Shown: positions 25,054 to 63,986 of the stretch, one piece after another
How the letters are laid out: every line of letters begins with the position of its first letter
Position numbering within the stretch: the stretch's first letter is position 1
Source of the DNA: Selaginella moellendorffii
Lineage: Eukaryota > Plantae > Lycopodiophyta
Assembly (NCBI RefSeq): GCF_000143415.4
Contig: NW_003314264.1
Coordinates: 2,365,710 to 2,429,709 of the forward strand
Direction: 5' to 3'
DNA length: 64,000 bases
Translations under genes and position numbers: made by a program
Notes under the pieces: model-generated
Databases searched by the model: none
What the model was told of the DNA's origin: nothing
What the model saw: only the letters and a program-made list of their open reading frames with translations

Positions 25054-25142
25054 GACGGGTATGGTTTTACTTTGGTATTGCTCTTTATTCTGGTTCTCTC
25101 TTAACATTCCTCCTCAACTTTGCAGGCCTCAAGACCATTTTC

Positions 25143-27092
25143 ATGATCCGAGCTTCGGAAATTTATCCCGTCAATGCATTCGCCCCGAGAGCAGAGATAG
25201 ACTCCTACGCAGCTGCGTTGCAAGAATGCTCCAGAGCGCAGGACCTGGCCAAAGGGAGACAAACTCACGCCAGAATTGTGGAAGCGGGCTGCAACCACGA
25301 CAGATTCCTGTGCAACCTGCTGGTGAGGATGTATGGAGAATGTGGCAGCATTGGTGAGGCCAGCTCCGTCTTCGACAGCATCCACGTCAAGAACCTCTAC
25401 TCATGGAGCATCATGATATCGGCTTGCGTCCAAAATGGACAAGGCTTGAGAGCTCTCAAGCTCCTGTGGAACATGGACCAGGAAGGGATCAGCCCTGACA
25501 GAGTCGTCCTCATCGAGATGTTGGGAGCCTGCTCGCATCCCGAGCTCGTCCTAGTTGGCAAGGCACTCCATGACCGGATTTCAAAGCTGGAAGATTTGAG
25601 AGCTCACGTCTTCGCGGCCACGGCAGTGATCAGCATGTATGGGAGATGCGGCTATCCGGAACTGGCAGTACAGGTTTTCAACGGGATGGAACTCAAGACT
25701 GTGGTGTCCTGGAACGCGATGCTTACCGCTTATGCCCAGCGTGGGTATCACCGGCAGTGTCTCCAACTTTACGAGGACCTGACGAGGCTCTCGGACGTCT
25801 CTCCAAACGCTATCACCTTCGTGGTGGTGGTAGACGCTTGCTCTCTTCTCGGGGACCTGGATCACGGTCGGAGTGTCCACGAGAGAGTAGCCTCACAGGG
25901 ACTGGAGAGCGATCACATCGTGGGAACTTGTCTTCTCAACATGTACTCACGGTGTGGCAGCGTCACCGAAGCCAGGAACGTCTTCGACAAACTCGAGCGG
26001 CCCAACGTTGTCTCCTGGACGTCGATGATAGCCGCATACGCCAACCATAGCTACGATCTTGAAGCTCTCCAGCTGCTTAGAAGGATGGATCTGGAGGGTG
26101 CCAAGGCAGAGGAGATGACACTCGTCAACGCACTCGGTGCCTGCTCCAACCTCAAAGCACTGGAGGAAGGGAGAAAGATCCATGCCCGGCTGAGTTCCAG
26201 TGGCATCCAATCCGACTTCTCGGCCAGCGCGCTTGTCAACATGTATAGCCGCGCAGGGAGCTTGGAGGAAGCCAGAGACGCATTTCGCAGCAGGAAAAAC
26301 AGGAATGCGATCTGCTGGACGGCCATGCTCGCGGCCTATGCCCAGCACGGGCATAACCACGACGCGCTGCGGCTCTACAAGGAAATGGACCTGGAAGGCT
26401 TGAGACCCGACGACGTGACGCACGCCGCGGTCCTTGGAGCCTGTGCTTGCCTGGGAGCTCTCGCGGAAGGCCGGAGAGTCCACCGTCGAATCCTCAGCAC
26501 TCGGAGCTCCTCGGGCTTGGATGTTGTTCTCGGCACAGCCACCGTCAACATGTACGCCAAGTGCGGCCGAGTGGACGAAGCCAAGCTCGCCTTCGACGGC
26601 ATCTCCGACAAGAGCGTCTTCTGCTGGACGGCCATGGTCGGAGCTTACGCACGAAACGGGCACGGCGAGAAGGCCGTGGAGCTCTTCAGAGAGATGGTGG
26701 AGTCGTCGCGGACGCTCCCGAACGACGTGACTTTCACGACCGTGCTCAACGCCTGCAGCCATGCCGGGCTGGTGGACGAAGGCAAGTACTTCTTCGCGCT
26801 CATGGACAAGGTCTACGGGATTGCTCCCAGTGGCGAGCACTACGGCTGCATGATCGACCTGCTGGGACGGGCGGGGCGGCTGGAGGAAGCCGAGCGGATG
26901 ATCACTGGCATGCCATTCCCCGCAGACAAGATCTCGTGGGAAACTTTGCTCGGGGCGTGTAAGTTACACGGTGACATTGGCCGGGGAGCTCGCGTGGCGG
27001 AGCAGGCACTTAGAATGGATCCGGAGAATGCTGCAAACTACGTGATACTTTCGGATCTCTATTTTGCCAGAGGCGAGACAAACATGAACTGA
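25143..27092 (+). CDS. PLS-class PPR protein (E-type C-terminus, no DYW), single exon
   Basis: 649-aa ORF with P-L-S triplets, 'HYGCMIDLLGRAGRLEEAE', 'WETLLGACKLHG', 'ANYVILSDLY'. Confidence 0.95.
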   Translation: MIRASEIYPVNAFAPRAEIDSYAAALQECSRAQDLAKGRQTHARIVEAGCNHDRFLCNLLVRMYGECGSIGEASSVFDSIHVKNLYSWSIMISACVQNGQGLRALKLLWNMDQEGISPDRVVLIEMLGACSHPELVLVGKALHDRISKLEDLRAHVFAATAVISMYGRCGYPELAVQVFNGMELKTVVSWNAMLTAYAQRGYHRQCLQLYEDLTRLSDVSPNAITFVVVVDACSLLGDLDHGRSVHERVASQGLESDHIVGTCLLNMYSRCGSVTEARNVFDKLERPNVVSWTSMIAAYANHSYDLEALQLLRRMDLEGAKAEEMTLVNALGACSNLKALEEGRKIHARLSSSGIQSDFSASALVNMYSRAGSLEEARDAFRSRKNRNAICWTAMLAAYAQHGHNHDALRLYKEMDLEGLRPDDVTHAAVLGACACLGALAEGRRVHRRILSTRSSSGLDVVLGTATVNMYAKCGRVDEAKLAFDGISDKSVFCWTAMVGAYARNGHGEKAVELFREMVESSRTLPNDVTFTTVLNACSHAGLVDEGKYFFALMDKVYGIAPSGEHYGCMIDLLGRAGRLEEAERMITGMPFPADKISWETLLGACKLHGDIGRGARVAEQALRMDPENAANYVILSDLYFARGETNMN

Positions 27093-27978: not shown

Positions 27979-28241
27979 TGCCGTCGCGCGCGATCACAAA
28001 AATCCCCCTCTCTCGCGAGTGCTCGAGGAGGAACCCTAGACCCGTAGCTCGTACAGTATCGATGGAGGAAAAAGAAAAAGAGTGGCCCTCTCTTTCTCGC
28101 CCCCTTGTTTGTTTTTCTTTCTATTTTTTGAGGAAGGCCGCATCTTTCATTGCTTTCAAAATCATGATTTATGAGGTTCCGTGCGAACAGGATTAATTTT
28201 CATTGATTTTTACAAAGCTAGAAAAAGTAAGAAAAAAAATG

Positions 28242-28314
28242 CACTCTCGGTGGGACTCGAACCCACAATCCCTTGATTAGAAGTCAAATGCCTTGTCCAT
28301 TAGGCCACGAGAGC
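28242..28314 (-). tRNA. tRNA-Arg (anticodon UCU)
   Basis: Minus strand GCTCTCG-TGGCCTAATGGACAAGGC-ATTTGA-CTTCTAA-TCAAG-GGATT-GTGGGTTCGAGTCCCAC-CGAGAGT-G: 73-nt cloverleaf with A and B boxes, followed by a T-run Pol III terminator. Confidence 0.95.
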
Positions 28315-40259: not shown

Positions 40260-41986
40260 ATGGAAGATAGAGCTACTGTAGTTCATCCTCAAGTTTGCGA
40301 GATAGAGGTACTCATTCTTTCCTTTCCTCTGTGTTGTCATGAAACTTTGGTCTCTCTAGATTGACAGACCGGTTGCTAGCGAGAAACGAAGACCCAGCTT
40401 GAAGCTCGAGATACCCTCCAAGCCCGCGGATGTTCCCGGGAAACCTCCGGCGGCGACGCCCACGCCGAGATCGAGTGGCAAGAAATCCGTGCAGTTCCAA
40501 ACTTTCAGTAATGCTCTTCCGCCGCAGCCGCCGCCACCGCCATCCATCTCCAACACCCCAGGAGCAGCAACACCCCGATCAAACTTCTCGCTCATGCGGC
40601 TCCTCACTCCCCGCTCCGCAAGAACAGTGTCTCTTCCATTGCGATTCACACTATCGTCTTCTTCGTCCGCGTCTCCGTCGTCTTCTTCGTCGACAGGGGC
40701 CGCGGCAGTGAGTCCAGATGCCATTAGAGAAAATTTGATCTCGTCATCAAAGGTAGAACTTTTCTTTCTTTCTTTCATCGTCAACTTTGTCATCTCGTCT
40801 TCGCAGGACAAGCAGATCAAACGCTCCAAGTCGGCGCTCGATGGTCACCAAAAGGAGAAGAAGCTCACCCGGCTTTACTCCGGAACGTTTCTCGTCAAGC
40901 CGACCACTCCTCGTCCTCGTCCCCGGGAAACTTCACAAGCAGACGACGGAGCCCAAGACACTGACCATGCCAACGACACCCAAGGTACGTAAACTTCCTA
41001 TGATCAAGTTCATGGAGACCATGGTTCCATGATCTGAAAGTTGCAAAACTTTTAGACGGCGAGGACGAGGAGATCCCCGAGGAGGAAGCAGTGTGCCGCA
41101 TTTGCCTGTGCGATCTGGGCGAGGAGGGCAAGACGCTCAAGCTCGAGTGTAGCTGCAAAGGGGAGCTGGCGCTGGCTCACGAGGAGTGTGCTCTCAAGTG
41201 GTTTGGGATTCGAGGCAACCGCGAGTGCGATGTTTGTGGCCAGGAGGTCGTCAATCTCCCCGTCACGCTCGTCAGGCTCCAGCAAAACCAAAACAATATC
41301 AACGCTGAAACTCAAGTTCTCCAGCAAGCTCAAATGGCGCAAATGAGTGCTCTCAACAGGTAGATTCGTCTATCTCGCTCTACAGCTTTGTAGATTCCAT
41401 GGTGTTCTTCCAGGATTTGGCATGACGTTCCCGTGCTCGTCATGATCAGCATGCTCACGTACTTTTGCCTCCTCGAGCAGCTACTGGTGATAATTCTCTG
41501 ATGATTTCGATTGATTTGCGGATGGATTTCTTTGTTGCCTACTACAGGTGAGACGAAAGGGCCCTCGAGCATTGATGCTAGCTCTGCCATTCGCCGTCAT
41601 GTTTGGAATGCTCACTGCCATCACAGCATCAACGCTTGGTAAGATTTCGTTTCTCTCTCTTTCTCTCGAGCTCCTGTCTGTAACAATAGATTCTTTCGAC
41701 GCACAGTGAGGCGGCGTTGTATGTGGCTCTTTGCCATCTTTCAGGTCGGCTTTGTCATACTATTTGCGCATGTTTTCTACAGTTGGGTAAGATCACTCTC
41801 TTAAAACTTTTTTAGCTCTTATTTCAATCCATGATCCAGATGAAGTTGAACCCAATCTTGTCGATTTCGCTGGCCGGTTTTGCGGGATTCGGATTGTCCA
41901 TGATCGTGAATGCTCTCCTCCTGGAATGTTGGAGCTGTAGAACAAGAGCAGCGCGACAAGAAGACGCAAGCCAAGATATCGTGTAA
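40260..41986 (+). CDS. RING-CH (RINGv, MARCH-type) membrane E3 ubiquitin ligase, multi-exon
   Basis: '[62 protein letters not shown]', then '[23 protein letters not shown]' and several TM helices. Confidence 0.92.
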
Positions 41987-42002
41987 ATATGTACTGTAAT
42001 TC

Positions 42003-42851
42003 TTACACACTTGTTTTGTGATAGAACAAAATGTATGCATCGCTCGAGCACCTCGGTAGGTCAAAAATCTCTTCCACCACCTCATCGTCAAAGCTGTACC
42101 ACTTTCCATTTGGAAGTTTGATGGTTGCCGTGTAGTGCCCATAGTCGGAGTCTCCCATATGGTTAATCAATCCATACAGTTTGTACTCCTGTTCCCAAAG
42201 TGTCAAAATCTGTGGAAACTCCACCGTGGTGTCGATCTTCTCCACACTCCCCGAAGAATCGCACTTAAACCTTGCCAAATGGAGGATCAAATTCCGTGGG
42301 AGCTTCCCAAGCTCCAGTTTCTTGACAGCGTCCTTTTGGTTTCTCTTGCACTTTGGGCAGTGCCAGGAATCCAAAACATCGTCTTTGGTGTACTCCCGGA
42401 TGCATGATTCCAGAGAAACCGGCTGCGAGAGAGAGGTGAAAGATTCAGGCGTGGAGGAGACCATGTTGGAGCACTTCGGGCATTTCACTGTGGATTTGGT
42501 TTGGCCCTCGAAGAACTCTGCGACTGGAGAGGGGAGCTCTGGCCGCACCTTTTTTCCTTTAGGGGGATTCTCTTGCTTCTTGAATTCTTGATCCAGGGCA
42601 CCCAAAAGAAAATCGAGATACTCCTGTGCGTCCTGCTGGACGCTCGGATTTGTCAGCTTTGGCCCTGGTTTTACAGACTTGCTTGCGTTATTCCAAATCG
42701 CCCTCACCACTTTCCTAAACTCGATTGCTATCTCACCTCTTACGCTGTCTGATTTCAAGAAGAAGCTAGAGAGCTCCGGAGTGTGCGCAACGCACTGTAA
42801 AGCACTGTTGGCTGAACAAGAATTCCCTTGGTTCTGAAAGCCCACAGCCAT
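42003..42851 (-). CDS. Intronless minimal ubiquitin-specific protease (peptidase C19)
   Basis: Cys box 'GFQNQGNSCSANSALQC', 'QQDAQEYL', two CPKC zinc knuckles, 'LPRNLILHLARF', His box 'HMGDSDYGHYTA...WYSFDD...AYILFY'. Confidence 0.92.
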   Translation of the reverse strand: MAVGFQNQGNSCSANSALQCVAHTPELSSFFLKSDSVRGEIAIEFRKVVRAIWNNASKSVKPGPKLTNPSVQQDAQEYLDFLLGALDQEFKKQENPPKGKKVRPELPSPVAEFFEGQTKSTVKCPKCSNMVSSTPESFTSLSQPVSLESCIREYTKDDVLDSWHCPKCKRNQKDAVKKLELGKLPRNLILHLARFKCDSSGSVEKIDTTVEFPQILTLWEQEYKLYGLINHMGDSDYGHYTATIKLPNGKWYSFDDEVVEEIFDLPRCSSDAYILFYHKTSV

Positions 42852-43021
42852 TTTCCTTGCACACAACCCAAAAGAAAACCTAGAATATTTAAAGAAAACA
42901 AACAGGCATTAAATAGTTTAGTAATAATTATAAAATAATACAATTACCGATTTTTGATAGATTTTAAATGGAGAGTTTTTGATGATAAATGATAATGTTA
43001 AAATTATTTGTAAAATGCCTA

Positions 43022-43196
43022 TGTGAGGGCTAAGTGTACGGTTACGATGCCGTATACTAATATTAGCGTAGTGGGATTTTTGTAGCCGTTGGATTAGTTT
43101 CAATCCAGACCATTCGCTCCTGTATATAAGCTAGGGTTTTTGGGCTAATTGATATGCACATTTCTGTATTCCCTTTCCATATTCCATGCACTCACA
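43022..43196 (+). repeat. 5' LTR of element A
   Basis: Direct repeat of 53237-53411; contains TATATAA; about 11 differences by eye, all transitions. Confidence 0.95.
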
Positions 43197-43215
43197 TTAG
43201 TGGAGGTGAGGGGCA
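43197..43215 (+). promoter_or_regulatory. Probable primer-binding site of element A (tRNA-Ala-like)
   Basis: 'ttagtggaggtgagggg' directly after the LTR resembles TGGTGGAG...GGGG, the complement of a tRNA-Ala 3' end, with G>A decay. Confidence 0.5.
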
Positions 43216-43430
43216 CCTTTGACTGTCCCTAGGGAGTGCTTAGATTTGGGATTTCGGTTTAGATGTAGCTTTTGCATCGTCTAGATCTAGTTTTTTCCAT
43301 TTCCTTTCTTTTGTTCTTTCCTTTCAGGATTTTGGTTTAGATTTAGCTTTTTGCATTGTCTAGATCTACCATTTCTTTCCAGCTTTTTTGTCATTTCTCT
43401 TCTTTTGCTCTTTCTTTTTCGTTCATCTTC

Positions 43431-44143
43431 ATGGCCGATCCGCAATCTCCTCCTTTGACTTTAGAGTAGCAGTTGGTTCAATTGCTTGATGCTATGTGCT
43501 TGCAATTGAACAACCAAACTCAGTTGATGGCGGCATTCACAGCACGTGGTACAACTCCTCCTGCTCTTGGTGCCAATCCTCGCGTTCGGCCGGAGTTTTT
43601 TCGTGGGAATCCTGGGGATGATGTGTACAATTGGTTTGATCACTTTACGGTGATTGCCACATATCATTATTGGGATGATGCTCGACGGTTGCGTGAGTTT
43701 CCCACGTGTCTCCAAGGGACGGCGTTGCAGTGGTACAATGGTTTGAGCGCAGCCACTCGTAGGGATTGGAGTGTTCTCCTGGATGTCTTCAAATGCGCCT
43801 TCGGACATGCCGATGATTGTGATGATGCTTTCCAACATTGCATCGTCTTCGCCAAGGGCCATCTGAATCAGTGATGCAATTTGGCATTCGTTTCCGAAGT
43901 CTTTTGTTTCGTGCGGAGCCAAATATGTCGGAGCGGATCAAGCTAGGAATGTTGTGGCCAGCACTTTGTCAAGATCTTGTCGGACTTGTGCATGCACTTG
44001 CTCCTGCCACCCTTGACGATGCTCTTCGATTGGCACAACGTTATGAGACGTTGCCTCTTCCACTTCTTGCTGCACGTCCTTCCGCTCCACTTCCTATGGG
44101 TGATGGTCCTGTTCTAATGGAGGTTGATGCTACTGCTGCTCGA
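43431..44143 (+). pseudogene. gag of element A (5' part; premature stop and frameshift)
   Basis: 'RPEFFRGNPGDDVYNWFDHF...LQGTALQWY', 'LRQGPSESVMQF', 'PVLMEVDA'; TAG at codon 13; frameshift near 43840. Confidence 0.85.
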
Positions 44144-45294
44144 TGTAAGGAACCAACTCGCCGAGGTGTCGTAGGCTAAAGGAACCCCGAAAGAATGACC
44201 AAAATGACAAAGAGTTCATCGGATGGGACCAAGTCGAAGATCGAGTCCAAGACCGACTCTAGGACCGAGTTCGAGATAGAGTCCGGAATCGAGTCCAAGA
44301 CCGACTCGGGGACCGAGTTCGAGTCCGAGTTCGAGACCGAGTTCGAGACGGAGTCCGAGATCCGAAATCGGGTCCGAGACCGAGTCCGAGGTCGAGTCCG
44401 AGGTCGGGTCCAAGATCGGGTCCGAGATCGAGTCCGAGATCGAGTCCGAGACCGAATCCGAAGTCGGATCCGAAATCGGGTCCGAGATCGAGCCAGAGAC
44501 TAAGTCCAAATACTAATACGGGTCAAGGGGTGAAAGCCCAAAGCGTGCGTCTCCCAGGGGGGGGGAGGGGCTGCAGGGGGTTCCAAAAGTATAGTAGGGA
44601 TAGTAAGGTCCAGGAACCAGTTTAGAAGGGACTCTCCAGTGGGGCTCCCAAACTGACTTGAGGTTGGGACTGGGATCGAGGGGCCTTGGGTGGGAGTGAG
44701 CATGGACTTGGTTGGTGCCGGAGGGGCCATCCAAGGAAGTGCTCAAGAGCAACTCCCACTCCCAAAAGGGAAACCAATTGCGGTGCTCCCGGCTCATGTG
44801 GAGTGGTGCCCCACTTGAGTACCATGTGGCTCATTGGTCCTCGCCCTTCCTAGGGGCTTGGGCCTTCCTTCGGGATGGAAGTGGGGGGCGAGAGGTACCC
44901 ATGCCGGGCCGCTAGGCCACGGTGTTTCGCCCCGGCATCCTGAAGCAAGTGTTGCACTCAAGACTTGGGATTTAAAGGGTCCTATGATCAAGTCTTGTGG
45001 TACCAAAGGATGTTAGGAACCTAGAAGCTTGGTGTGCTTGGCTGCTTGTGCTTGCGGGGAGTGTAGCCGAACCTTAAGTCCAGTCTAACCCGGGGAGGGG
45101 GATTGGGAGTGATTTGGGAATCCGTGGATGGATGGCTAACACTCCGTTGCTCGTGCAGTGAGTAGCTGAGACCAAGTAGGAGCTGGTACCATAGGCGAGA
45201 ACCTTGGCAAGGGAACTTAGCAAAAGCCAAGGCGGTGTTGGACGGATAGACGAGGTAAGCTGGCAAATTGGAAAGGAAAAATTTGTGGCTTACA
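44144..45294 (+). repeat. 5' LTR of element B, with an internal 6/12-bp tandem array (gagtccgagatc-like) at ~44230-44500 and a G run at ~44557
   Basis: Near-identical to 48390-49540 (about 18 differences by eye). Confidence 0.95.
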
Positions 45295-45353
45295 ATTTGG
45301 TATCGGAGCCTTTATCTCAGTTCTAGCGAAGGATAGAGGCGGATTGCTGGGAG

Positions 45354-46994
45354 ATGGCAAGGGCAGGGCGTAAGCGAACCCAGGTGGAGACGGTACCTCC
45401 GCCGGAGCTGGAGCCTCTGGTCGAACAAGAGGCTATAGATGAGGAATCCTTGCATGAGGAGAACTCTAGTGAGGAAACTTCCAAACAGGAGTCCGGTGGC
45501 GAGGTTCGGTCGTCCAAGGCTCGATTGGACGTGCTAAAAGGACAGTTGGCACAGACCAATGCCCTGCTGGAAACTCTCGTACGCAAGCTAAAGCGTGACG
45601 AGAGGCGGAAGAAAAAGAAAAAGACTGCGGATGCTGGCAGCGCAGAAGGTGCGGATCTTTCGGCCGGGACTGAGGCAAAACCAGACAAGGTCGAACAGAT
45701 CGAAGTAGAATCAGTCCCTCAGGCAGTTCCCAAGTACAAACCAAAGCCCCCACCGGTCTTCAAGGGAGTGAACGACTATAAAGTGGTGGAGGATTGGTTT
45801 TACGATATGGAGGACTACTTCCGAGCGTTGCGATTACCGAGCTCGGAGAAGGTCCCATGTGCAAAACTATACTTGGCAGATAATGCCAAGTCTTGGTGGA
45901 GAACGACAGAGGCCAACGAAGGACCAGTGGCCACTTGGGACATGATGAAGGCGAGGATCCGCGCAACATACGTTCCTCCGAATGCCACTCTACATCTGAG
46001 AGATGAGCTGAGTAGGCTGAAGCAGACTGGAACCATCCAGGAATATGTGAATGGGTTCATGGCAAAGAGGATACTTGTCACGGACATGGGGGATATAGAT
46101 GCGTTCCATGCCTTCATATCAGGTTTGCAAACCTGGGCTCGCGGTGAGATGATGCGGTGGAACCTGACCAACTACAAGGAAGCGTTGGATGCGGCCATCA
46201 AGGTGCATTTCAACGATAACCTGCGAAAGGGGAACACAACGGGGTTGGGATCCACATTTAGCAAAGGGGCCAAACCAAGGGGAACGTATAGCAAGGGGAA
46301 ATTCAAAAGGAGTTTCTTTAAGAATGAGTCCTCGGGGTTCCAGAAAGGCAAATCCGGTGGCCAGCGAGCGAGTACGTGGGGGAGTCAAGCGAAAAAAGAC
46401 AAACCCACGGATAAGAAGGTCAAGTCGTATAGCAGCGTGGGAAACAACGTATGCTACAACTGCGGCGAAGCGGGACACTTCTCGAGGGAATGTCCCTACC
46501 CGAAGAAGGCCAGAGCCAATATGGCCATCAAGTCGGGTGAAGTCCAAACTGAGGTATGTGATCCAGTCCCTAACTCAAAGTTACTCATTACACGAGCAAC
46601 TTTGGTAGAGAGTCGTTCGCGACATCTACTAGCCCTCCGAGGGAAGCTCGGAGGTAGCTTTGTTAAGATCCTTATTGACACGAGTGCTTCGGATAATTTT
46701 GTGGCTGCAGACATAGTCCGGCAAGCCGGACTAACGGTGCAGCGGCTAGGCGAACCAAGGACTATAGAGTTTGTTCAGGGTAGCCAAAGCACCGATGAGG
46801 TACTTCGACAAGCGAGAGTCGAAGTGGGGACATGGAAAGTGGACATGGATTTCACCGTCTTGGACATGGCGGGATTTGACGTGATCTTCGGAATGGATTG
46901 GTTTAATCGGTTCGTGGTAGCCCTGCATGGACAAGGTAGGAACTTTGTGGTATTGGCGAATGCCCAAGGAAGAAGATCTAGGGTGGAGGCCTAG
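45354..46994 (+). pseudogene. gag-protease of element B
   Basis: Gag 'YLADNAKSWW', 'LKQTGTIQEY', CCHC 'CYNCGEAGHFSREC'; protease 'ILIDTSASDNF' (DTG>DTS) and 'FDVIFGMDWF'; TAG separates it from the in-frame RT. Confidence 0.9.
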
Positions 46995-47042
46995 GATCTA
47001 AAGGTAGGGCAAAGCAAAGCCAAAGAGTCATGCTTAAACCTG

Positions 47043-48030
47043 GTGTCCACGAGAGGACAACTCACTAAAGGAACTAAAACAGCCTTTTTGTGCTTACTCT
47101 CGGTGAAGAGTGACAAAAAGACAAGAACGGAAGAAGTACCTTTAGTGATCCAGCAGGTGCTGGACCAATTCCAGGATACCATGCCAGAGGAGCTACCGGC
47201 AGGGTTGCCCCCTGCACGACCGATAGAACATAAGATTGAGCTGGTCGAGGGTGCTGAGGCGGTGGTTCGTCCACCCTATCGATTGAACGAAAAAGAACTC
47301 AAGGAGCTCAAGAGCCAACTAGAGGAGTTGGTGGACAAAGGGTATGTTAGGTTGAGCAAGTCGCTGTATGGGGCGCCGGTGCTATTTGTGAAAAAGAAAG
47401 ATGGATCTATGCGCATGTGCATAGACTACCGGTTGCTCAACAAGTATACCAAGAAGAACAAGTACCCTTTGCCAAGGATCGAGGACCTGTTCGATAGGTT
47501 GGGAAAGGCAAAATACTTCTCGAGGATTGACCTAAGGTCAGGATACTACCATATCAGGGTAGCTGAGGAAGATGTCGAGAAGACAACCTATCGAACGAGG
47601 TATGGGAGCTTTGAGTTTCTGGTGATGCCCTTTGGGCTGTGCAATGCGCCGGCAACGTTTTCGGCGTTGATGAACCACATCTTTGTACCCTATCTGGATC
47701 ACTTCGTGGTCGTCTATATCGACGATATCCTGATCTATAGCGAGACGCTAGAGGAGTATGCCGAACACTTGGCGAAGGTGTTTGAGAAACTAAGGGAACA
47801 CAAACTGTATGCTAAAGAGAGCAAATGTGACTTTGCTCAACAAGAGGTAAAGTTTCTCGGGCATGTGGTGGGCCAGGACGGGCTCAAGGTGGACCCGAAG
47901 AAGGTCCAAGCGATCCAGGAATGGGAGCGGCCTTCGAATGTACATGAGTTGAGGGCGTTCTTGGGGCTATGCAACTACTATCGAAAGTTTATCAGACACT
48001 ATTCGAGAGTAGCCCTACCCTTAACGGACC
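47043..48030 (+). pseudogene. Reverse transcriptase of element B, truncated before RNase H
   Basis: '[13 protein letters not shown]', '[11 protein letters not shown]', '[12 protein letters not shown]', '[10 protein letters not shown]', '[12 protein letters not shown]'; homology ends at 'ALPLTD'. Confidence 0.92.
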
Positions 48031-48370
48031 AAACAGGCGCGCCGAAAGTGAGCTAATTAGCATGGGTTAGCTAGTTCGACCAGGCGTAGGGAGCTACGCC
48101 CGACTCCCTGCGGGGATGTCGAATCCGTAAACGTATTCTACGGAGGTTGGGTTCGAGTCCCAACCCCTAGTAAAGCAAGGCTGGGTTCAAGTCCCGACCC
48201 CATACTAGGGCGTGGTGAGGGGAGGAGTATAGGGACACCTATATTCCGTTGTCATGGGCTCTTGGCCGGGGAGGCTAACTTAGGCACACCGCTAAGTGGG
48301 GGGATGCCCCCGGAGACATGGTCAACAAGTCGTAGGATAAAACGAGGCGTTCGATGTGGGCATCGAACTT
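48031..48370 (+). ncRNA. Putative structured cis-RNA element with two tRNA T-arm/B-box hairpins in the 3' region of element B
   Basis: At least nine closely spaced stem-loops readable by eye, including GGTTGGG-TTCGAGT-CCCAACC (48145-48165) and GGCTGGG-TTCAAGT-CCCGACC (48179-48199). Function unknown. Confidence 0.6.
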
Positions 48371-48389
48371 CTTCTATGGGTGGTGGAGT

Positions 48390-49540
48390 TGTAAGGAACC
48401 AACTCGCCGAGGTGTCGTAGGCTAAAGGAACCCCGAAAGAATGACCAAAATGACAAAGAGTTCATCGGATGGGACCAAGTCGAAGATCGAGTCCAAGACC
48501 GACTCTAGGACCGAGTTCGAGATAGAGTCCGGAATCGAGTCCAAGACCGACTCGGGGACCGAGTTCGAGTCCGAGTTCGAGACCGAGTTCGAGACGGAGT
48601 CCGAGATCCGAAATCGGGTCCGAGACCGAGTCCGAGGTCGAGTCCGAGGTCGGGTCCGAGATCGGGTCCGAGATCGAGTCCGAGATCGAGTCCGAGACCG
48701 AATCCGAAGTCGGATCCGAAATCGGGTCCGAGATCGAGCCAGAGACTAAGTCCAAATACTAATACGGGTCAAGGGGTGAAAGCCCAAAGCGTGCGTCTCC
48801 CGGGGGGGGGGGGGGGCTGCAGGGGGTTCCAAAAGTATAGTAGGGATAGTGAGGTCCAGGAACCAGTTTAGAAGGGACTCTCCAGTGGGGCTCCCAAACT
48901 GACTTGAGGTTGGGACTGGGACCGAGGGGCCTTGGGTGGGAGTGAGCATGGACTTGGTTGGTGCCGGAGGGGCCATCCAAGGAAGTGCTCAAGAGCAGCT
49001 CCCACTCCCGAAAGGGAAACCGATTGCCGTGCTCCCGGCTCATGTGGAGTGGTGCCCCACTTGAGTACCATGCGGCTCATTGGTCCTCGCCCTTCTTAGG
49101 GGCTTGGGCCTTCCTTCGGGATGGAAGTGGGGGGCGAGAGGTACCCATGCCGGGCTGCTAGGCCACGGTGTTTCGCCCCGGCATCCCGAAGCAAGTGTTG
49201 CACTCAAGACTTGGGATTTAGAGGGTCCTATGATCAAGTCTTGTGGTACCAAAGGATGTTAGGAACCTGGAAGCTTGGTGTGCTTGGCTGCTTGTGCTTG
49301 CGGGGAGTGTAGCCGAACCTTAAGTCCAGTCTAACCCGGGGAGGGGGATTGGGAGTGATTTGGGAATCCGTGGATGGATGGCTAACACTCCGTTGCTCGT
49401 GCAATGAGTAGCTGAGACCAAGTAGGAGCTGGTACCATAGGCGAGAACCTTGGCAAGGGAACTTAGCAAAAGCCAAGGCGGTGTTGGACGGATAGACGAG
49501 ATAAGCTGGCAAATTGGAAAGGAAAAATTTGTGGCTTACA
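48390..49540 (+). repeat. 3' LTR of element B
   Basis: Direct repeat of 44144-45294, followed by TSD CTCGA. Confidence 0.95.
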
Positions 49541-49545
49541 CTCGA

Positions 49546-52500
49546 GTCTAAGGACGAGCGCGAGGACGTGGTCGTGGCCGTGATGTTTGCTGTTGGGCGT
49601 GTGATGAAGTTGGTCATACTTATCGGCGTTGCCGTCGTTTTCCGGATTAGCGACCTCCATTTCCTGGGTGGAGACCTTGGCGTCAGGAACATCCCCTGGG
49701 TGCTGCTGCAGTGGAAGGTCTAGACACCGAGATGCATCTGGGAAACGAGGAGTCGCGCGAGTAACGAAGGGACCTTGCACGAATAAATTAGTGACCCCTC
49801 CATCTTTCTTTCGAGAGTATCATCAAGGGGTTCACTCGGCACCAGTTCATCCAGTGTTTACTTTCCAAGCTCGTTTTTATAACAAGAGGTCTTCTATTAT
49901 TCTCTCCATGTTGGTTGATATAGGTTCGAATTTATCTTCTATTGCTCGACCTGTTGCCACACGTTGTCATCTACAGTTGCGTCGTGTGGTGGAACCAGTT
50001 TTCATTCTTTATGGCAACGGCCATACACATGCATGTGCACGGGATGAGGTGGACCTGGTTGTGCGTGTGGGCGATCTCGAGCTTGAGTTGCAGTCGTTGC
50101 GGGTGGTGCCAAGTCAAGCTTTTGACCTCATTCTTGGTATGGATTGGTTGCAGCGCAATCATGCCAAGTGTGACTTTGAGGCTTCTCCCCCTTGTCTCAT
50201 ACTTCCTTATGTTTCATCCATTCCTCTCACTTCCATACCTCTTCGTCCCTCTACTTTTACCTCTGCTTCCATTACTTTTGTTCCCCCACTCTTTCCTTCT
50301 GTGTTTCCATCTTTTTCTGCTTTTCCCTTTTCCGATCCCTCCGACGATCTTTGTGTTGCAGTAGTTGACCGGCTCATGAAGGAGTATTCTGATCTCTTTG
50401 AATTTGACCTATCGTCTGGGGCCAAGATTGCCACATGTCATCCGATTCCAACCGGGGATGCTCGTCCAATCAAGGTTCCTGTTCGTCATCGGTCATCTAA
50501 GGAGATCAAGATTTTACGAGCAAACGTCAAGGAAATGCTGGAGAAGGGTGTTATTCGGAAGTCGCGGAGTCCTTGGGCATATGAACCTCATCTTGTGACG
50601 AAGCTTGATGGGAGTATTTGTTTCTGCATCGACTATCGTCTGTTAAACGAAGTGACGATCCCAGATGTGTATCCTCTTCCTCACACTGCTGATCTCTTGG
50701 ATCGTCTGGGGCGAAGTCGTTGGTTCACCAAGCTAGATCTTGCTTCTGGGTATTGGCAAGTACTGATGGCCAAAGAAGATATTCCTAAGACTACTTTTCA
50801 TACACCATTTGGTTTGTACGAGTTTTTGGTGATGCCGTTTGGTTTGAACAATGCTCCAGCAACTTTCCAACGGATGATGGATGAGGTTCTTTGCGATATG
50901 CCGGAGCTGACTGCTGACTTCATTGATGATGTCTTGATCCACTCGGAGGGGACGTGGGAGGAGCACGTTCGTGATGTTTGTAAAGTGTTGGATCGGCTAC
51001 GCGACGTTGGTTTAAAGCTGAAGCGGTCAAAATGCATGTTTGGGTCCAAGGACACAACTTATCTTGGGTACCGTATTTCTTGTGAGGGTTTGCAAGTTGA
51101 TTCTAACAAACTTGTGGCTGTTCTAAAGTTCCCTCCTCCGAAGTGTGTGAATGATGTGCAGCGCTTTTTGGGTAAGGTGCAGTATCTCAGTCGTTTTGTG
51201 GATCATCTTTCCGATGGCACTACACCATTGCGAGCGTTGCTAAAGTCATCCATGTCATCTTTCATCTGGTCTCCAGATTGTGAGCGGGCGTTCGTGGATC
51301 TCAAAGAGCTATATCCTGACTACATTCGACCTTTTAATTTGCGCGTGGATGCTTTTGACATTGGTCTTGGAGGTGTGTTGATGCAATAGAGCTCGAGTGT
51401 GCCTGGTCAGCGCCATCCCATTGCACACATAAGCCGTACATTACAACCAGCGGAGATGAACTACTCCACGACGGAGAAGGAGTGTTTAGCAGCAGTCTGG
51501 GGTTTCGAGAAACTTCATGCATATCTACATGGTTCTCAGACGTTACTTGAAGGTGACCATGCTGCTGTTACTTCATTATTGAAGCGGAAGAACCTGGTTG
51601 GTCGTACGGCTCGATGGGCTTTGAAGCTTCAGATATATGATTTCAATGTTGTTCATCGCCCAGGGAGTTCTATGGCTAATGCTGATGCCCTTTCTCGAGC
51701 TCCTGTTCCTTCTCCACTCACTTCTCATGTTTCTGACGAACCTGTTGTTCCAGCATCTGTGGATTTTCTATACGAGGATTCTGTGCCGGCGGCGGTTGCT
51801 ATCCTTGACGTTCAGTGTCCACAGGGCGTAGAGCAAGATCTACCTTCTCCTGATGAGGTTCGCGAGGCTCAAAAGATTGAGCCGTGGATTCGAAGGCTTC
51901 GAGATGGGTTTGAGAATCCTGCATCACTTGCTGATGACTTGCCTTTCCGGCATTTACATTCTCAATATCACCTTCAAGATGGCCTTCTTTATTTTGTGGG
52001 GACGGATCCTGATGATCATTTACAGCTGGTGGTGCCTTCGGTGTTTATTCCACGGTTTCTCCATGCCTACCATGATTCTCCTGTTCTAGGTGGGCATATG
52101 GGACACCGTCGTGTCACCGAGAAGCTGCACAGGTCTTTCTATTGGCCGGAGATGCGACGTGATATTATCCGGTATGTGCGTAGCTGCGTTTGGTGCCAAG
52201 CTCATAATACTCCCCCTTGTGCTGCGGAAGGATGGTTGGAGTCAATTGCAGTTTCCCGTCCGTTTGAGTTGGTGGCGTTTGATCTTATGGGACCTTTTCC
52301 ACGATCAACTGCTGGCAATGAGTATGTTATTATTGCTTCTGACTACTTGACTCGTTGGGTGGAAGTTGGTGCTCTTGCTAGCGCCTCTGCAACTGCTGTT
52401 GGATACTTCCTCCTCAATTGAGTGGTGTTCCAGCATTCTTGTCCAGAGCGGATTCTTTCGGATAATGGTCCTGCATTTATGGCTGAGGTATTTCATGTTT

Positions 52501-53204
52501 TGACATCTCGGTTGGGGATACGCCACACTTTTACGAGTGCTTATCATCCACAATCAGACGGTCTAGTGGAACGGCTCGTTCGGACATTCAAAGGGATGAT
52601 TGCAAAGTATGTGAACTTTCAGCATTCGGATTGGGATGGTTATTTGCCATCTCTTCGGTATATCTATGTCACAGGGGTGCAGAGTTTTGTTGGTGCTTCA
52701 CCATATAAACTTCTATATGGTCATGATCTAATATTACCAACAGAGCTGGGTTTACCTTCGCGATTGCCACGAGCTCTTGATGCTAGGTTATGGGATCAAT
52801 ATTTAACAAGCATTCTTCCACTTGTCCGAGCAGAGTCTACCGAACACTTAGGCCATGTACAAGTGGGACAACAACGGCACTACAACTCCCATCATTGTCC
52901 ACCTGCAGAGTACAAAGTGGATGATTTGGTGTTAGTCCATTTTCCTCATCTTACGGTACGTGGTTTATCTAAGGGGCTCCTTGCGCAGTGGAAAGGACCG
53001 TATTGGGTGTTGCGGCAAGTTGGACCGCAAGTTTATGAGGTTTGGCATGACGTTCAGCAGGTCGATCCTCCAGAGATTGTGCATGTGCAGCGGTTAAAAC
53101 GCTTCATACAACGGGATCAGGAGCAGTTAATACCATCTACAGATCCGCCGATGCCTCCTCCTGACGTTCCTCCAGATCCCGGCCCATCTACAAGAGAACC
53201 CTGA
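49546..53204 (+). pseudogene. gag 3' end and pol (PR-RT-RH-INT) of element A
   Basis: PR 'MLVDIGSN'/'FDLILGMDWL'; RT 'FCIDYR', 'MPFGLNNAPATFQR', 'FIDD'; RH 'NYSTTEKECLA', 'ADALSR'; INT 'H..GGHMG..C..C', 'SDNGPAF', 'YHPQSDGLVER', 'WKGPY'. Confidence 0.92.
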
Positions 53205-53236
53205 CAGCCTTCCATTATTCCGAGAGGACGGGATGA

Positions 53237-53411
53237 TGTGAGGGCCAAGTGTATGGTTACAATACCGTATACTAATATTAGCATAGTGGGATTTTTGTAG
53301 CCGTTGGATTGGTTTCAATCTGGACCACTCGTTCCTGTATATAAGCTAGGGTTTTTGGGCTAATTAATATGCACATTTCTGTATTCCCTTTCCATATTCC
53401 ATGCACTCACA
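53237..53411 (+). repeat. 3' LTR of element A
   Basis: Direct repeat of 43022-43196, preceded by purine-rich 'gagaggacgggatga'. Confidence 0.95.
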
Positions 53412-59075: not shown

Positions 59076-59760
59076 TTTAAAGGAATAACGTTTCTAGGAA
59101 AGACGAAAACATCGTTAGTAAAGCATATTTTCACCATAATGAAAATAAAAATGCACTCCATGACTTTTACTTTACATTTGAAAAGTTTCTAAAATATTAA
59201 AGAGTCTTACCTCCATAAAGGTTTGAATAAACAATAGATTAGTTTTGGTTTAAACCAGACGAAAAGGTCGCCTCTTGCTACTCACAAGAAAAAAGTACCA
59301 GTCACTGAAAGTTTCACCTCTCCTCATCTCTCAGGAATCCACCTCTTTTGGTTTAAGCTTAATTTCGCCACAACCAGCTTGCTCTTGCTGCTCCGCCCAG
59401 CACGAGTTTGTGCTAGCCCGCACGACAAAAACAAAATAGATTTTGCCCTTGTTGTAAACTCTGTATGGATCAGCAGGAAATCTGATCCAGACGATAATCT
59501 TGTTGTGGGCTCGTGACATGGATTAAGTGGTCTAAAGTCTCTTCCGTACTAAAGCCTTAAAAAGCTTTTCACAGAAGTTTAAGTAAAACAGGATGCCTCA
59601 TGGATTGTGCATTGCCATGAGGGCTTGCGCAGATTTTACTCATAAAATATACTTTACATTCCAACAAATATTCTATACCGTATCAGAATATTTGTTTGAA
59701 TGTATAGTATATTTTCATCGCCCTTAACAGCATACCTAGATTATTTGGTAGTCAGCAAGA

Positions 59761-60771
59761 ATGAGAGACGTGTTGGTCAAGGACATCCATCATCTCCAAG
59801 ACTATCCAGTCTTTGGTTCACAGACATCGGCTTTTGTTACGTTTGGGAGCGTGGGGGAGCTCATGGCCTTCTTGCGACAGCAGCACCCGCTCTGCCCACA
59901 CGGCTGCGATAGCTCGGCACTCACCAAGTTTGACTATTTCGAAAACCACATGCTGATCCAGCCGCGCTACAAGTGCACGGTGTGCAAACGGCACTTCACC
60001 CTGGGTGGCACAATACGAGCGAAACGAGCCAAGAAAGAAGATGGCGGTCGTCCAAGGAAGAGACCCAAGAAGGAGCAGCAGCAGAACAAGTCAAGGGGGC
60101 AGTGTCTTCCTCGCGAGATGTTGCCTTCGTCGATGATTCCATCGGCCGCAACCAGTGGGAGTCGCGGTTGTGCATCCCCGCGCAGGGCAAGTCGCGGAGC
60201 TTCGAGGAGAACGGCGAGGCCATCACCAAGCACTACAGGTCAATGCCCTAGTCAACTCGTGGTCCGGGATCAGTCGTTGCCAGTCAACGCCTGTGACCTC
60301 GAGGGATACGTGCAAGACGAGGAGATCTTCCAGGAGGTTGAGAAATTGTGGTGTAAAATGGATTTGGAGGACAAGGGTCCTTCCGTGGAGGACGAGGAGA
60401 AGAACTTTCTCAGGGATTTCAATGTCGATGATGGTGATGATCTAGATTTACTACTGGGTCTTGAGGAGTTCAGCCGGGAGTTCAGCAACCCACAGGGCCA
60501 GGGCACCCGATTCGATTTGGGCGAGGAGCAAAACAATTTTGCCATGGAGCTGGTGCGGCAAATGGAGGAAGAATTTCCCATCCCAGCACTAGACGAGGAG
60601 AATGATTTCGCCATGGAGTTGGAGCGGGAAATTGAGGAAGCATCTATGACAGCAAAGAAACAAGCAATGCTTGTATGGAAGGACGAAGTGCGTAAAATTA
60701 GAAATCAAGACAATCTCACATTCACCACAAATCACATTGGTTTTGGAGGTCCCCAAACTCTTAAATGCTGA
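59761..60771 (+). CDS. Intronless protein with a divergent Dof-type C2C2 zinc finger and acidic C-terminal region
   Basis: 'CPHGCDSSALTKFDYFENHMLIQPRYKCTVCKRHFTLGGTIR' aligns to Dof consensus CPRCxSxxTKFCYYNNYxxxQPRxFCxxCxRYWTxGGxLR; NLS-like 'RPRKRPKK'; D/E-rich tail. Confidence 0.78.
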   Translation: MRDVLVKDIHHLQDYPVFGSQTSAFVTFGSVGELMAFLRQQHPLCPHGCDSSALTKFDYFENHMLIQPRYKCTVCKRHFTLGGTIRAKRAKKEDGGRPRKRPKKEQQQNKSRGQCLPREMLPSSMIPSAATSGSRGCASPRRASRGASRRTARPSPSTTGQCPSQLVVRDQSLPVNACDLEGYVQDEEIFQEVEKLWCKMDLEDKGPSVEDEEKNFLRDFNVDDGDDLDLLLGLEEFSREFSNPQGQGTRFDLGEEQNNFAMELVRQMEEEFPIPALDEENDFAMELEREIEEASMTAKKQAMLVWKDEVRKIRNQDNLTFTTNHIGFGGPQTLKC

Positions 60772-61099
60772 TCGATGAGCAATAAATGGATGATAAATGA
60801 AAAGCATTAGTCAATAGAAGTAATTTTGTTTCTGGAACAAGTTCATTACATTATTTGTTATTAGGTGAAGAGTTTTTCATGAAAAAAGACTCACCCATCC
60901 TTTGTGAAAGAAAGAAAAAAAGAAATTAGGGCGAATTAGGTCTCTATAAGGTCGTCCCCGGAGGCAGAGGAGCCGCGATGCTGTGATTGTCAACCGAGCA
61001 GGTATTCTGGTGGCGCCCTTGCCGACAATGCAGCGATCGTCCTAGCGATCGATCGATCGATCGATCGATCGCTCGCTCGCTCCGGAGAAGAGCAGAGAA

Positions 61100-62011
61100 A
61101 TGATCTGGGCAGGATTCGCGTACGCCGCGGGCGCCGCGATCGGCCACAGCTGCATCGATGCCAGCAGGAAATGGGCGTCCCAGCGCTTCTCGGACCGCGA
61201 GCTCGTAGCTCTGGTGGCTCTCCTGGACGCGCTGCTCCTCTCCTCCATGGCGCTCCTCTCCGGCGGCTTCGATCTCTTCTCTTTGACGCGGCTGGACATC
61301 GAGTACGTCGCCGCGCTCCTCGTCACCGCGGCGATCAAGGCTCTGGTGGGGTTCATGTACCAGCGTGCTCTCCACGTCTCCCCTCTCTCGGTCACTGTTC
61401 CTTATCTAGCTTTCACTCCAGTTCTTCTGGTTTTTACGAGCTATGTGATCATCAACGAGCTCCCGAGCTCGCAGGGGCTCATGGGAATCGTGGTGGTCAC
61501 TCTCGGCGGCTACTTCCTCGCGCTGGATCACCCGGCGGAGGTGGAGGTGAAGAAATCCGACGAGTCCCCGGGCAAGATCGTCTCGGTTCTTCCTTTGCTT
61601 CCTTGGAACTCGTCCAAGGCTTGTGACAAGGTCCCAAAGTTTTCCACCGATGGCGATGGTGTCGTGTTGGATCTCAGTGAGAAGAACTCCCCTCCGGTGG
61701 CGATTCCTGGAGGGAATTCTTCCTGGTGGCCACAGATTCAATGGTAAAGATTTCTCTCTTTTTTTTTTCGCTTTTCCTGTTCTAAAGTTTGCAAAAGGGA
61801 AGAGGGGACGCTTCTCATGCTGGGTGTTGCAGCGTTACTGAGCATAAGTAACAGGTTCGTTTTCTCGAGATTCATTTATGGCTTCTCAGCTCCATTGTCT
61901 TTGCAGCCTTGACAAAATGGCTGGTCACTTGGCACCATCGCTTCTCAATTTTGCCGCTCTCCAACGAGGCTTTACGGCCGTTCCCGTGGTTTTATATCTA
62001 CTTGTCACAAG
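61100..62011 (+). CDS. EamA/DMT-family transporter, 5' exons only (3' part replaced by duplicated segment)
   Basis: Multiple TM helices, 'YQRALHVSPLSVTVPYLAFTPVLL...INELPSSQGLMGIVVVTLGGY', second repeat begins 'LLMLGVAALLSISNSLDKMA'; exons ~61100-61743, ~61798-61855, 61907-62011. Confidence 0.8.
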
Positions 62012-62060: not shown

Positions 62061-63545
62061 AATGCTCTTCCGCTGCAGCCGCCGCCACCGCCATCCATCT
62101 CCAACACCCCAGGAGCAGCAACACCCCGATCAAACTTCTCGCTCATGCGGCTCCTCACGCCCCGCTCCGCAAGAACAGTGTCTCTTCCATTGCGATTCAC
62201 GCTATCGTCTTCTTCGTCCGCGTCTCCGTCGTCTTCTTCGTCGACAGGGGCCGCGGCAGTGAGTCCAGATGCCATTAGAGAAAATTTGATCTCGTCATCA
62301 AAGGTAGAACTTTTCTTTCTTTCTTTCATCGTCAACTTTGTCATCTCGTCTTCGCAGGGCAAGCAGATCAAACGCTCCAAGTCGGCGCTCGATGGTCACC
62401 AAAAGGAGAAGAAGCTCACCCGGCTTTACTCCGGAACGTTTCTCGTCAAGCCGACCACTCCTCGTCCTCGTCCCCAGGAAACTTCACAAGCAGACGATGG
62501 AGCCCAAGACACTGACCATGCCAACGACACCCAAGGTACGGAAACTTCCTATGATCAAGTTCATGGAGACCATGGTTCCATGATCTGAAAGTTTCAAAAC
62601 TTTTAGACGGCGAGGACGAGGAGATCCCCGAGGAGGAAGCAGTGTGCCGCATTTGCCTGTGCGATCTGGGCGAGGAGGGCAAGACGCTCAAGCTCGAGTG
62701 TAGCTGCAAAGGGGAGCTGGCGCTGGCTCACGAGGAGTGCGCTCTCAAGTGGTTTGGGATCCGAGGCAACCGCGAGTGCGATGTTTGTGGCCAGGAGGTC
62801 GTCAATCTCCCCGTCACGCTCGTCAGGCTCCAGCAAAACCAAAACAATATCAACGCTGAAACTCAAGTTCTCCAGCAAGCTCAAATGGCGCAAATGAGTG
62901 CTCCCAACAGGTAGATTCGTCTATCTCGCTCTATAGTTTTATAGATTCCATGGTGTTCTTCCAGGATTTGGCATGACGTTCCCGTGCTCGTCATGATCAG
63001 CATGCTCACGTACTTTTGCCTCCTCGAGCAGCTACTGGTGATAATTCTCTGATGATTTCGATTGATTTGCGAAGTTCTTGGATGGATTCTTTGTTGCCTA
63101 CTACAGGTGAGACGAAAGGGCCCTCGAGCATTGATGCTAGCTCTGCCATTCGCCGTCATGTTTGGAATGCTCACTGCCATCACAGGATCAACGCTTGGTA
63201 AGATTTCGTTTCTCTCTCTTTCTCTCGAGCTCCTGTCTGTAACAATAGATTCTTTCGACGCACAGTGAGGCAGCGTTGTATGTGGCTCTTTGCCATCTTT
63301 CAGGTCGGTTTTGTCATACTATTTGCGCATGTTTTCTACAGTTGGGTAAGATCACTCTCTTAAAACTTTTTTAGTTCTTATTTCAAACCATGATCCAGAT
63401 GAAGTTGAACCCAATCTTGTCGATTTCGCTGGCCTGTTTTGCGGGATTCGGATTGTCCATGATCGTGAATGCTCTCCTCCTGGAATGTTGGAGCTGGAGA
63501 ACAAGAGCAGCGCGACAAGAAGACGCAAGCCAAGATATCGTATAA
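62061..63545 (+). pseudogene. 5'-truncated second copy of the RING-CH E3 gene (possible chimera with EamA)
   Basis: Intact RING-CH and TM exons, stop at 63543-63545; lacks the ATG exon and the start of exon 2 seen at 40260-40509. Confidence 0.75.
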
Positions 63546-63986
63546 ATATGTACTGTAATTCTTACACACTTGTTTTGTGATAGAACAAAATGTATGCATC
63601 GCTCGAGCACCTCGATAGCTCAAAAATCTCTTCCACCACCTCATCGTCAAAGCTGTACCACTTTCCATTTGGAAGTTTGATGGTTGCCGTGTAGTGCCCA
63701 TAGTCGGAGTCCCCCATATGGTTAATCAATCCATACAGTTTGTACTCCTGTTCGCAAAGTGTCAAAATCTGTGGAAACTCCACCGTAGTGTCGATCTTCT
63801 CCACACTCCCCGAAGAATCGCACTTAAACCTTGCCAAATGGAGGATTAAATTCCGTGGGAGCTTCCCAAGCTCCAGTTTCTTGACAGCGTCCTTTTGGTT
63901 TCTCTTGCACTTTGGGCAGTGCCAGGAATCCAAAACATCGTCTTTGGTGTACTCCCGGATGCATGATCCCAGAGAAACCGGCTGCG
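62061..63986 (+). repeat. Near-identical direct duplicate of 40510-42427 (3' part of RING-CH gene plus 3' part of USP gene)
   Basis: Collinear from 'aatgctcttcc' to 'gaaaccggctgcg' with scattered SNPs and a ~9-nt intronic indel near 63071. Confidence 0.95.

Follow-up and report, generated by a model that had tools for sequence, protein, structure and literature searches.

A chain of hairpins with twin tRNA T-arm look-alikes is the 3' untranslated region of an abundant land-plant Ty3/Gypsy family and a candidate cis-acting RNA signal

In the window (the whole 64,000-nt stretch of Selaginella moellendorffii DNA analyzed here), the reverse transcriptase (RT) of a Gypsy-type retrotransposon breaks off and is followed by a chain of hairpins, two of which resemble the T-arm of a tRNA. 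This arrangement raises the question of what the hairpin chain is and whether it belongs to the retrotransposon family or to this copy alone. Here, we find that the chain is the native 3' untranslated region (3' UTR; pol to purine-rich tract) of a very abundant land-plant Ty3/Gypsy family, and that the element carrying it (44144-49540) is a recently inserted derivative that is not autonomous and retains gag, protease, and most of RT. We give a probability of roughly 0.45 to our best explanation as a whole, in which a native 3' UTR, carried by a deletion derivative, would serve as a cis-acting RNA signal.

The element has the LTR pair, TG..CA termini, target-site duplication, primer-binding site (PBS), purine tract, and gene order of a Ty3/Gypsy retrotransposon, and we hold this reading of its anatomy with high confidence. 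Its parts are as follows.

44139-44143 (left) and 49541-49545 (right), no strand: target-site duplication CTCGA, 5 bp, directly abutting both LTR ends
44144-49540, plus strand: Ty3/Gypsy LTR retrotransposon, 5397 bp (5.4 kb), with paired LTRs, PBS, and gag-PR-RT
44144-45294, plus strand: 5' LTR, 1151 bp, TG...CA, about 25 units of a 12-nt tandem repeat
45298-45310, plus strand: PBS TGGTATCGGAGCC, located by sequence just after the 5' LTR end
45354-46994, plus strand: gag-protease open reading frame (ORF), 546 aa (Pfam Retrotrans_gag, zf-CCHC, RVP_2)
47043-48056, plus strand: RT ORF (Pfam RVT_1, E 6e-39)
48378-48388, plus strand: purine-rich tract GGGTGGTGGAG, immediately 5' of the 3' LTR
48390-49540, plus strand: 3' LTR, 1151 bp, pairing with 44144-45294

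The two LTRs are 98.5% identical (44144-45294 versus 48390-49540). The PBS, TGGTATCGGAGCC at 45298-45310, presumably resembles the complement of the 3' end of initiator tRNA-Met. At the other end of the internal region, the GGGTGGTGGAG tract holds T's and is therefore PPT-like rather than a pure polypurine tract. The gag-protease ORF is closed by an in-frame stop at 46992-46994. Homology to RT stops near 48034 (...PLTDQT), the final seven codons of the RT ORF run into the hairpin chain, and a Pfam search of the sequence from 48034 to the 3' LTR detected neither an RNase H nor an integrase domain. Relative to full-length family members, RNase H and integrase have been lost, as in a non-autonomous derivative.

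Several features of the surrounding DNA were also recorded. Within each LTR (44222-44532 and 48468-48778), about 25 degenerate 12-nt repeat units of the GAGTCCGAGATC type generate long spurious ORFs on both strands. The element is nested inside a compact Gypsy element (43021-53411) with 176-bp LTRs (43021-43196 and 53236-53411; 94% identical, TG..CA), a PR-RT coding region at 49629-51389, and an RH-IN region at 51399-53204; its 5' LTR is followed by TTAGTGGAGGTGAGGGG, in which there is no obvious tRNA PBS. The window also carries PPR, LRR, and other genes, which mark the host as a land plant. A 1.9-kb direct repeat (40510-42427 and 62061-63986; 98% identity, 21.5 kb apart) resembles a segmental duplicate rather than an LTR pair, because genic DNA (an EamA-like ORF at 61100-61747) precedes its second copy.

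The hairpin chain lies between the truncated RT and the purine-rich tract with its 3' LTR. Every hairpin that the initial annotation had listed between 48050 and 48368 was recovered at its coordinates, and the following components were distinguished.

About 48035-48389 (module proper 48035-48377), plus strand: structured 3' UTR module, a hairpin chain, from folding and hairpin density
48056-48075, plus strand: hairpin, 6 bp, local fold
48083-48100, plus strand: hairpin GGCGTAG/CTACGCC, 7 bp with a tetraloop, local fold
48101-48121, plus strand: hairpin, 8 bp with one bulge, local fold
48124-48144, plus strand: hairpin, 6 bp, local fold, the last of three adjacent hairpins spanning 48083-48144
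48145-48165, plus strand: T-arm look-alike 1, GGTTGGG-TTCGAGT-CCCAACC, 7-bp stem, from sequence and pairing
48166-48172 with 48203-48209, plus strand: outer stem CCTAGTA/TACTAGG, 7 bp, enclosing T-arm look-alike 2
48179-48199, plus strand: T-arm look-alike 2, loop TTCAAGT, with one C.A mismatch and one U.G pair
48224-48247, plus strand: hairpin, 10 bp, GACA loop, one G.U pair, local fold
48248-48326, plus strand: branched domain, a basal stem bearing three hairpins, from folding
48349-48368, plus strand: hairpin GTTCGATG-tggg-CATCGAAC, 8 bp, from folding

A model built from the local hairpins pairs 52% of bases (-122.5 kcal/mol). The minimum free energy (MFE) structure pairs 68% (-152.8 kcal/mol) and favors a competing pairing for 48166-48185 over the outer stem CCTAGTA/TACTAGG. 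Compared with dinucleotide shuffles, a check proposed in the initial annotation, the 359-nt stretch folded better than shuffled sequence (z of -3.81 on the plus strand and -4.34 on the minus strand); the two scores are similar, so the folding signal does not tell the strands apart. In 200-nt segments of the hairpin stretch, z ranged from -1.7 to -3.0, roughly the 1st to 10th percentile of the background of 200-nt segments across the window (mean 0; sd 1.2; 5th percentile, -2.0; 1st percentile, -3.1). Three perfect hairpins of at least 7 bp in 359 nt place the stretch in the top 2% of 359-nt segments. The hairpin stretch is structured beyond chance, but moderately so. When the module was paired by RNAduplex with the element's own 5' leader, complementarity was no better than with shuffles. 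Elsewhere in the window, the strongest 200-nt folding z values of the background scan were -4.95 and -3.3 (59601-59800 and 43201-43400). The highest count of perfect hairpins (peak 60701-61359) corresponds to a palindromic (GATC)n microsatellite at 61040-61075 in a genic region, and 60701-61359 was rejected as a comparable UTR.

Both T-arm motifs described in the initial annotation are canonical: at 48145-48165 and 48179-48199, the loops fit the tRNA consensus (G53, T54, T55, C56, R57, A58, and C61), with the closing G-C pair. They belong to a 24-nt unit that has been duplicated (48144-48167 versus 48178-48201; 21/24 identical). The 15-nt core of the first, TGGGTTCGAGTCCCA, is identical to the T-arm of tRNA-Arg(TCT) at about 28241-28314, as had been noted at the outset. 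That tRNA gene, on the minus strand, is genuine (67.5 bits; Rfam RF00005 match at 28242-28314) and follows two tandem intronless PPR genes (616 and 649 aa; 23203-27092). By chance, the twin T-loop pattern would be expected 0.00 times in the window, and it was found once; the single GGTTCRANNCC motif, with three occurrences versus 0.98 expected, is no more frequent than chance. The two B-box/T-loop motifs start at 48150 and 48184, 34 nt apart, in the internal region of the element, and neither LTR (44144-45294 or 48390-49540) contains the T-loop motif. Because the T-arm hairpins are duplicated and canonical, they are probably of tRNA origin.

Beyond the duplicated 24-nt unit, to which the tRNA likeness is confined, the module did not behave as a tRNA or as a tRNA-derived repeat. 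The Rfam tRNA model RF00005 gave no match in 47900-48500 at E values up to 10, in agreement with the earlier remark that there is no canonical cloverleaf, and in the window it matched tRNA-Arg only. ARAGORN proposed a 94-nt tRNA-Arg(gcg)-like structure at 48079-48172 with two acceptor mismatches and a 3-bp D stem. With RF00005 silent and the ARAGORN cloverleaf flawed, a tRNA gene or pseudogene was rejected. The best weak match in 47900-48500 was to the mascRNA/menRNA family RF01684 (16.0 bits, E 2.2, seven non-standard pairs), and this tRNA-like structure was also rejected, the score being far below the 42.5-bit gathering threshold. The initial annotation had offered a Pol III promoter as one option. 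Against it, no A box (TRGCNNAGTGG, up to two mismatches) was found upstream in 47950-48200, and no T-run terminator (at least four T's) was found on the plus strand from 47900 to 49600, including the 1.4 kb downstream. No SINE tail or target-site duplication of its own was found around the module. A tRNA-derived SINE was rejected on the lack of an A box, tail, target-site duplication, or depth excess over RT, and on the contiguity of the module with the LTR in independent contigs. The class of TRIMp3 elements (Cassandra, Helenus, Ajax) was rejected as well, since the T-loops here are internal rather than in the LTR and the element is 5397 bp with gag-PR-RT ORFs.

Whether the module is shared by the family was assessed by comparing the stretch 47531-48730 with contigs and reads of four public runs, including X1, X3, X19, and X23. 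In run X1 (DNA from the same organism), 22,424 contigs aligned, with likeness ranging from <90% to >99%. Summed depth in this run was 0.54-1.37 million for RT, 0.44-1.08 million for the module, and 1.2-1.98 million for the LTR. Module depth is about that of RT, indicating that the module is present in about as many copies as RT, and no part of the module showed in X1 the depth excess typical of a separate short repeat. An independent contig from X3 (48142-48400) runs from the module through the purine tract into the LTR. In a second organism (run X19), a contig extends over 48209-48559 with nine differences. By RT-like depth, thousands of diverged contigs, and the second organism, the module is present in most family members, defective ones included. 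The initial annotation had read the hairpins as a retrotransposon module rather than a SINE private to this copy; the RT-like depth and the contigs bridging the module to the LTR bear this out, and thousands of contigs at that depth contradict the ordinary tRNA-derived SINE in a single copy that it had named as the alternative. Run X23 yielded four RNA-seq reads on the 1200-nt stretch, all in the module (48011-48330) and none in RT or LTR, which are too few to interpret; three of the four share the same minor-variant letters.

The same comparison located the point at which this copy departs from others.

48034-48035, plus strand: copy- or subfamily-specific deletion or recombination junction, from loose ends in runs X1 and X3

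Copies diverge at loose ends that map to 48034, 48035, and 48037 in X1 and X3. Past 48034, other copies continue with ...GGGAAAAGGGAAGATGGTATGGACAG, which translates in frame to GKGKMVWTVE, as a Gypsy RT normally continues; in still other copies, ...GGCATATGTTGGGACCCGA leads into 48035. Because copies either continue RT in frame or enter 48035 differently, 44144-49540 is an internal-deletion or recombinant derivative, and the same divergence identifies the hairpins as the family's own 3' UTR. The original description had placed the hairpins where RNase H and integrase are missing. Both domains are indeed absent; however, the hairpins are no stand-in for them and represent an ordinary 3' UTR moved next to RT at 48034/48035.

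Family variants were then considered for their effect on pairing, as read position by position from the contig variant summary rather than from a family consensus. At 48130, A>G accounts for 99% of depth and adds a G-C pair, extending the third stem (48124-48144) from 6 to 8 bp. The change 48196 G>A converts U.G to U-A, and 48226 A>G converts A-U to G.U. In the 48349-48368 hairpin, a variant form GTTTGATG...CATCAAAC replaces the C-G pair at 48352/48365 with U-A, a compensatory change (taken from the loose-end consensus at 48342; 22 contigs). The sole listed variant that breaks a local stem is at 48248 (5% of depth). The tally, drawn from summary variants only and not from an alignment, is thus three pair-preserving or pair-restoring changes, one compensatory pair, and one low-frequency disruption. 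Other differences, at majority level at 48075, 48221, and 48347 and further ones at 48201, 48257, and 48343, affect either bases outside the local hairpins or long-range helices of the MFE fold, and such helices are therefore unsupported. Listed variants per 100 nt were about equal in the module (3.1), RT (3.6), and LTR (3.2), and variants were not depleted at stem positions. Roughly half of transitions leave pairing intact in any case, and both members of the compensatory pair belong to CpGs. The listed sequence variants would be compatible with constrained local hairpins, but their pattern does not reach significance.

Searches for relatives delimited the family further. No second copy of the module was found within the 64-kb window. 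Protein searches returned no close relatives (best RT identity, 64%). Gag matches were limited to two fragments (75% and 65% identity), both on Logan contig ERR10900155_11727, which has 77% DNA identity to the element and is without the 3' UTR. This contig holds two copies of a family about 77% identical (L023/L024), in opposite orientation and one inserted in the other, and the collection's gene calls on it read through stop codons. The ORF overlapping the module had no matches in a protein search. Two hairpin strings used as queries gave one chance-level match, and none in viral contigs. The family-specific twin T-arm pattern was absent from the metagenomes scanned, and the pattern of a T-arm plus its flank was absent from GTDB genomes. 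A generic twin T-arm pattern occurred at 22 viral and at least 120 metagenome loci, none of which had a Gypsy RT or similarity outside the T-arms; about half of these loci (T-loops 15 to 35 nt apart) overlap a predicted tRNA, mostly tRNA-Leu. The phage and prokaryote twin T-arms have no relation to the plant module and are consistent with integration sites at which a tRNA lies beside a partial copy of its 3' part. Among Gypsy elements, a metagenome chromovirus (L148; 63% RT identity) has a 790-nt 3' UTR without the T-loop motif, and the compact Gypsy host at 43021-53411 has about 31 nt between its integrase stop and 3' LTR, with no T-loop motif. The module is therefore no general requirement of Gypsy elements.

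An internal deletion or template-switch recombination at 48034/48035 took out the end of RT, RNase H, and integrase, and the same event set the 3' UTR directly behind RT. The observations can further be joined in a tentative account of function. We infer that the module may work in cis on the genomic (plus-strand) RNA, as a recognition structure for packaging or reverse-transcribing proteins; defective copies that rely on proteins supplied in trans would need to retain such a signal. Recognition would fall on the T-arm hairpins, as the T-arm-like stem-loop of box B recruits the template in brome mosaic virus (BMV). A tRNA-derived cis signal is our best guess for the module, and we regard the mechanism itself as tentative, with somewhat less than an even chance of being correct. 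Narrower still, and in our view unlikely, is the proposal that a structure-constrained twin T-arm 3' UTR module, mimicking the tRNA elbow, would be a packaging or reverse transcription signal shared by an autonomous chromovirus and its defective parasites (deletion derivatives, LARDs).

The region between pol and the purine tract is the usual site of captured host sequence. An ancestral tRNA- or SINE-derived piece and other palindromic sequence might have been captured there without any function, the hairpins persisting only because the family is young. In favor of such a neutral passenger, the variant density of the module equals that of RT and the LTR, the z-scores are alike on both strands, the tRNA likeness is limited to the duplicated 24-nt T-arm unit, related Gypsy elements are without the module, and in prokaryote and phage contigs partial duplication of a tRNA readily gives rise to twin T-arms. 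On the other hand, thousands of diverged contigs (likeness down to <90%) still have the module at RT-like depth, the listed stem variants are pair-preserving, pair-restoring, or compensatory, and the majority letter at 48130 gives a better stem than the 44144-49540 copy itself. We consider this explanation somewhat unlikely. That the module is instead a private event or artefact, i.e., a tRNA-derived SINE or an assembly chimera in one copy, has next to no probability. Although ARAGORN calls a tRNA-Arg(gcg)-like structure at 48079-48172 and the window holds no second copy, that structure carries two mismatches in the acceptor and a D stem of 3 bp, a SINE tail and target-site duplication are absent, the independent X3 contig (48142-48400) has the module contiguous with the LTR, and the module recurs at RT-like depth in thousands of contigs, in independent runs, and in a second organism.

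Two further explanations grant the T-arms a role of another kind. Enzymes that modify tRNAs also act on stem-loops resembling T-arms in mRNAs and in BMV RNA. The hairpins here might likewise draw host tRNA-binding proteins to the Pol II transcript, affecting its stability, export, or localization rather than its recognition by Gag; candidates would be T-loop modifying enzymes of the Pus4/TruB, Trm2, and Trm6/61 kind, La, and tRNA export factors. The match of both loops to G53-T54-T55-C56-R57-A58...C61 with the closing G-C pair is consistent with such mimicry, as is the weak resemblance to mascRNA (16 bits, E 2.2). However, the mascRNA score is far under the 42.5-bit threshold and includes seven non-standard pairs, and the cloverleaf and acceptor end are absent. 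We judge host-factor mimicry to be improbable. At the DNA level, the two B boxes might act as an internal Pol III promoter for a small RNA, or as TFIIIC-binding insulator or targeting marks. Two exact B-box/T-loop motifs lie 34 nt apart, and Cassandra, Helenus, and Ajax offer precedents inside LTR elements (PMC10886601). Against this stand the lack of an A box (47950-48200) and of a run of at least four T's on the plus strand (47900-49600), the location of the module inside a 5.4-kb Pol II-type element rather than in an LTR, the lack of a depth excess over RT, and the presence of only four RNA reads on the 1200-nt stretch. A Pol III element is the more improbable of these two.

If the module is a cis-acting signal, as we prefer, LTR retrotransposons would have a cis signal that derives from a tRNA, in a manner different from the way Cassandra and Helenus exploit Pol III promoters; this would represent a second route, beside Pol III promoters, by which LTR elements reuse tRNA sequence. 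Hardly any packaging or recognition signals are known for plant LTR retrotransposons, yet these elements make up most of large plant genomes, and it is unclear how helpers recognize non-coding parasites (LARDs, TRIMs, deletion derivatives). A motif pair that autonomous and defective members both retain would be a concrete candidate for such a signal. If the module is a neutral passenger, it would still be useful for recognizing the family, and would give rise to false calls of tRNAs or B boxes in annotation.

Comparison with known systems places the module among familiar kinds of sequence. It shares canonical T-loop/B-box motifs, and a 15-nt identity to the tRNA-Arg T-arm, with tRNA genes, SINEs, and mascRNA, but differs from them in having no cloverleaf, A box, terminator, tail, or private target-site duplication. 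The TRIMp3 elements Cassandra (5S), Helenus (tRNA), and Ajax (5S) carry small-RNA sequence in the LTR with a full promoter and are about 0.3 to 1.3 kb long (PMC10886601). Like them, the element described here is an LTR retroelement with sequence derived from a Pol III small RNA and depends on the proteins of autonomous elements; in contrast, it has T-arm hairpins only, without an A box, and these occupy the internal 3' UTR of a Gypsy derivative that is of Pol II type and 5.4 kb long. Well-conserved RNA structures are described for LARDs and TRIMs (PMC7215508, citing Kalendar 2004). In LARD and TR-GAG elements (PMC4350172), as here, a non-autonomous derivative keeps a structured non-coding region along with LTRs, PBS, and PPT, and these regions are assumed to be cis signals for mobilization in trans (PMC7215508, PMC4350172). 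Compared by description only, the LARD and TR-GAG domains differ in that the descriptions (PMC7215508, PMC4350172) include no tRNA T-arm motif.

Two systems are closer in proposed function. In Ty3, primer-binding segments lie in the 3' UTR beside the PPT, and RNA packaging and localization rely on UTR or POL sequences (PMC4974528). Both are Ty3/Gypsy elements with 3' UTR sequence adjoining the PPT, functional in Ty3 and putatively so here; the Ty3 segments complement the T and D arms of tRNAiMet, whereas the hairpins described here have the sense of the tRNA itself and mimic the T-arm of an elongator-type tRNA. The box B stem-loop of BMV resembles a T-arm. It is a bulged stem-loop needed in cis for recruitment of the template into the replication complex (PMC5869524), and like the T-arm hairpins it sits within a longer structured RNA; BMV, however, is an RNA virus that uses protein 1a and a single box B, so that the likeness is one of mechanism by analogy only, without homology. 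The kind of sequence behind the module is a known one, namely, structured non-coding domains and small-RNA-derived sequence in LTR retroelements.
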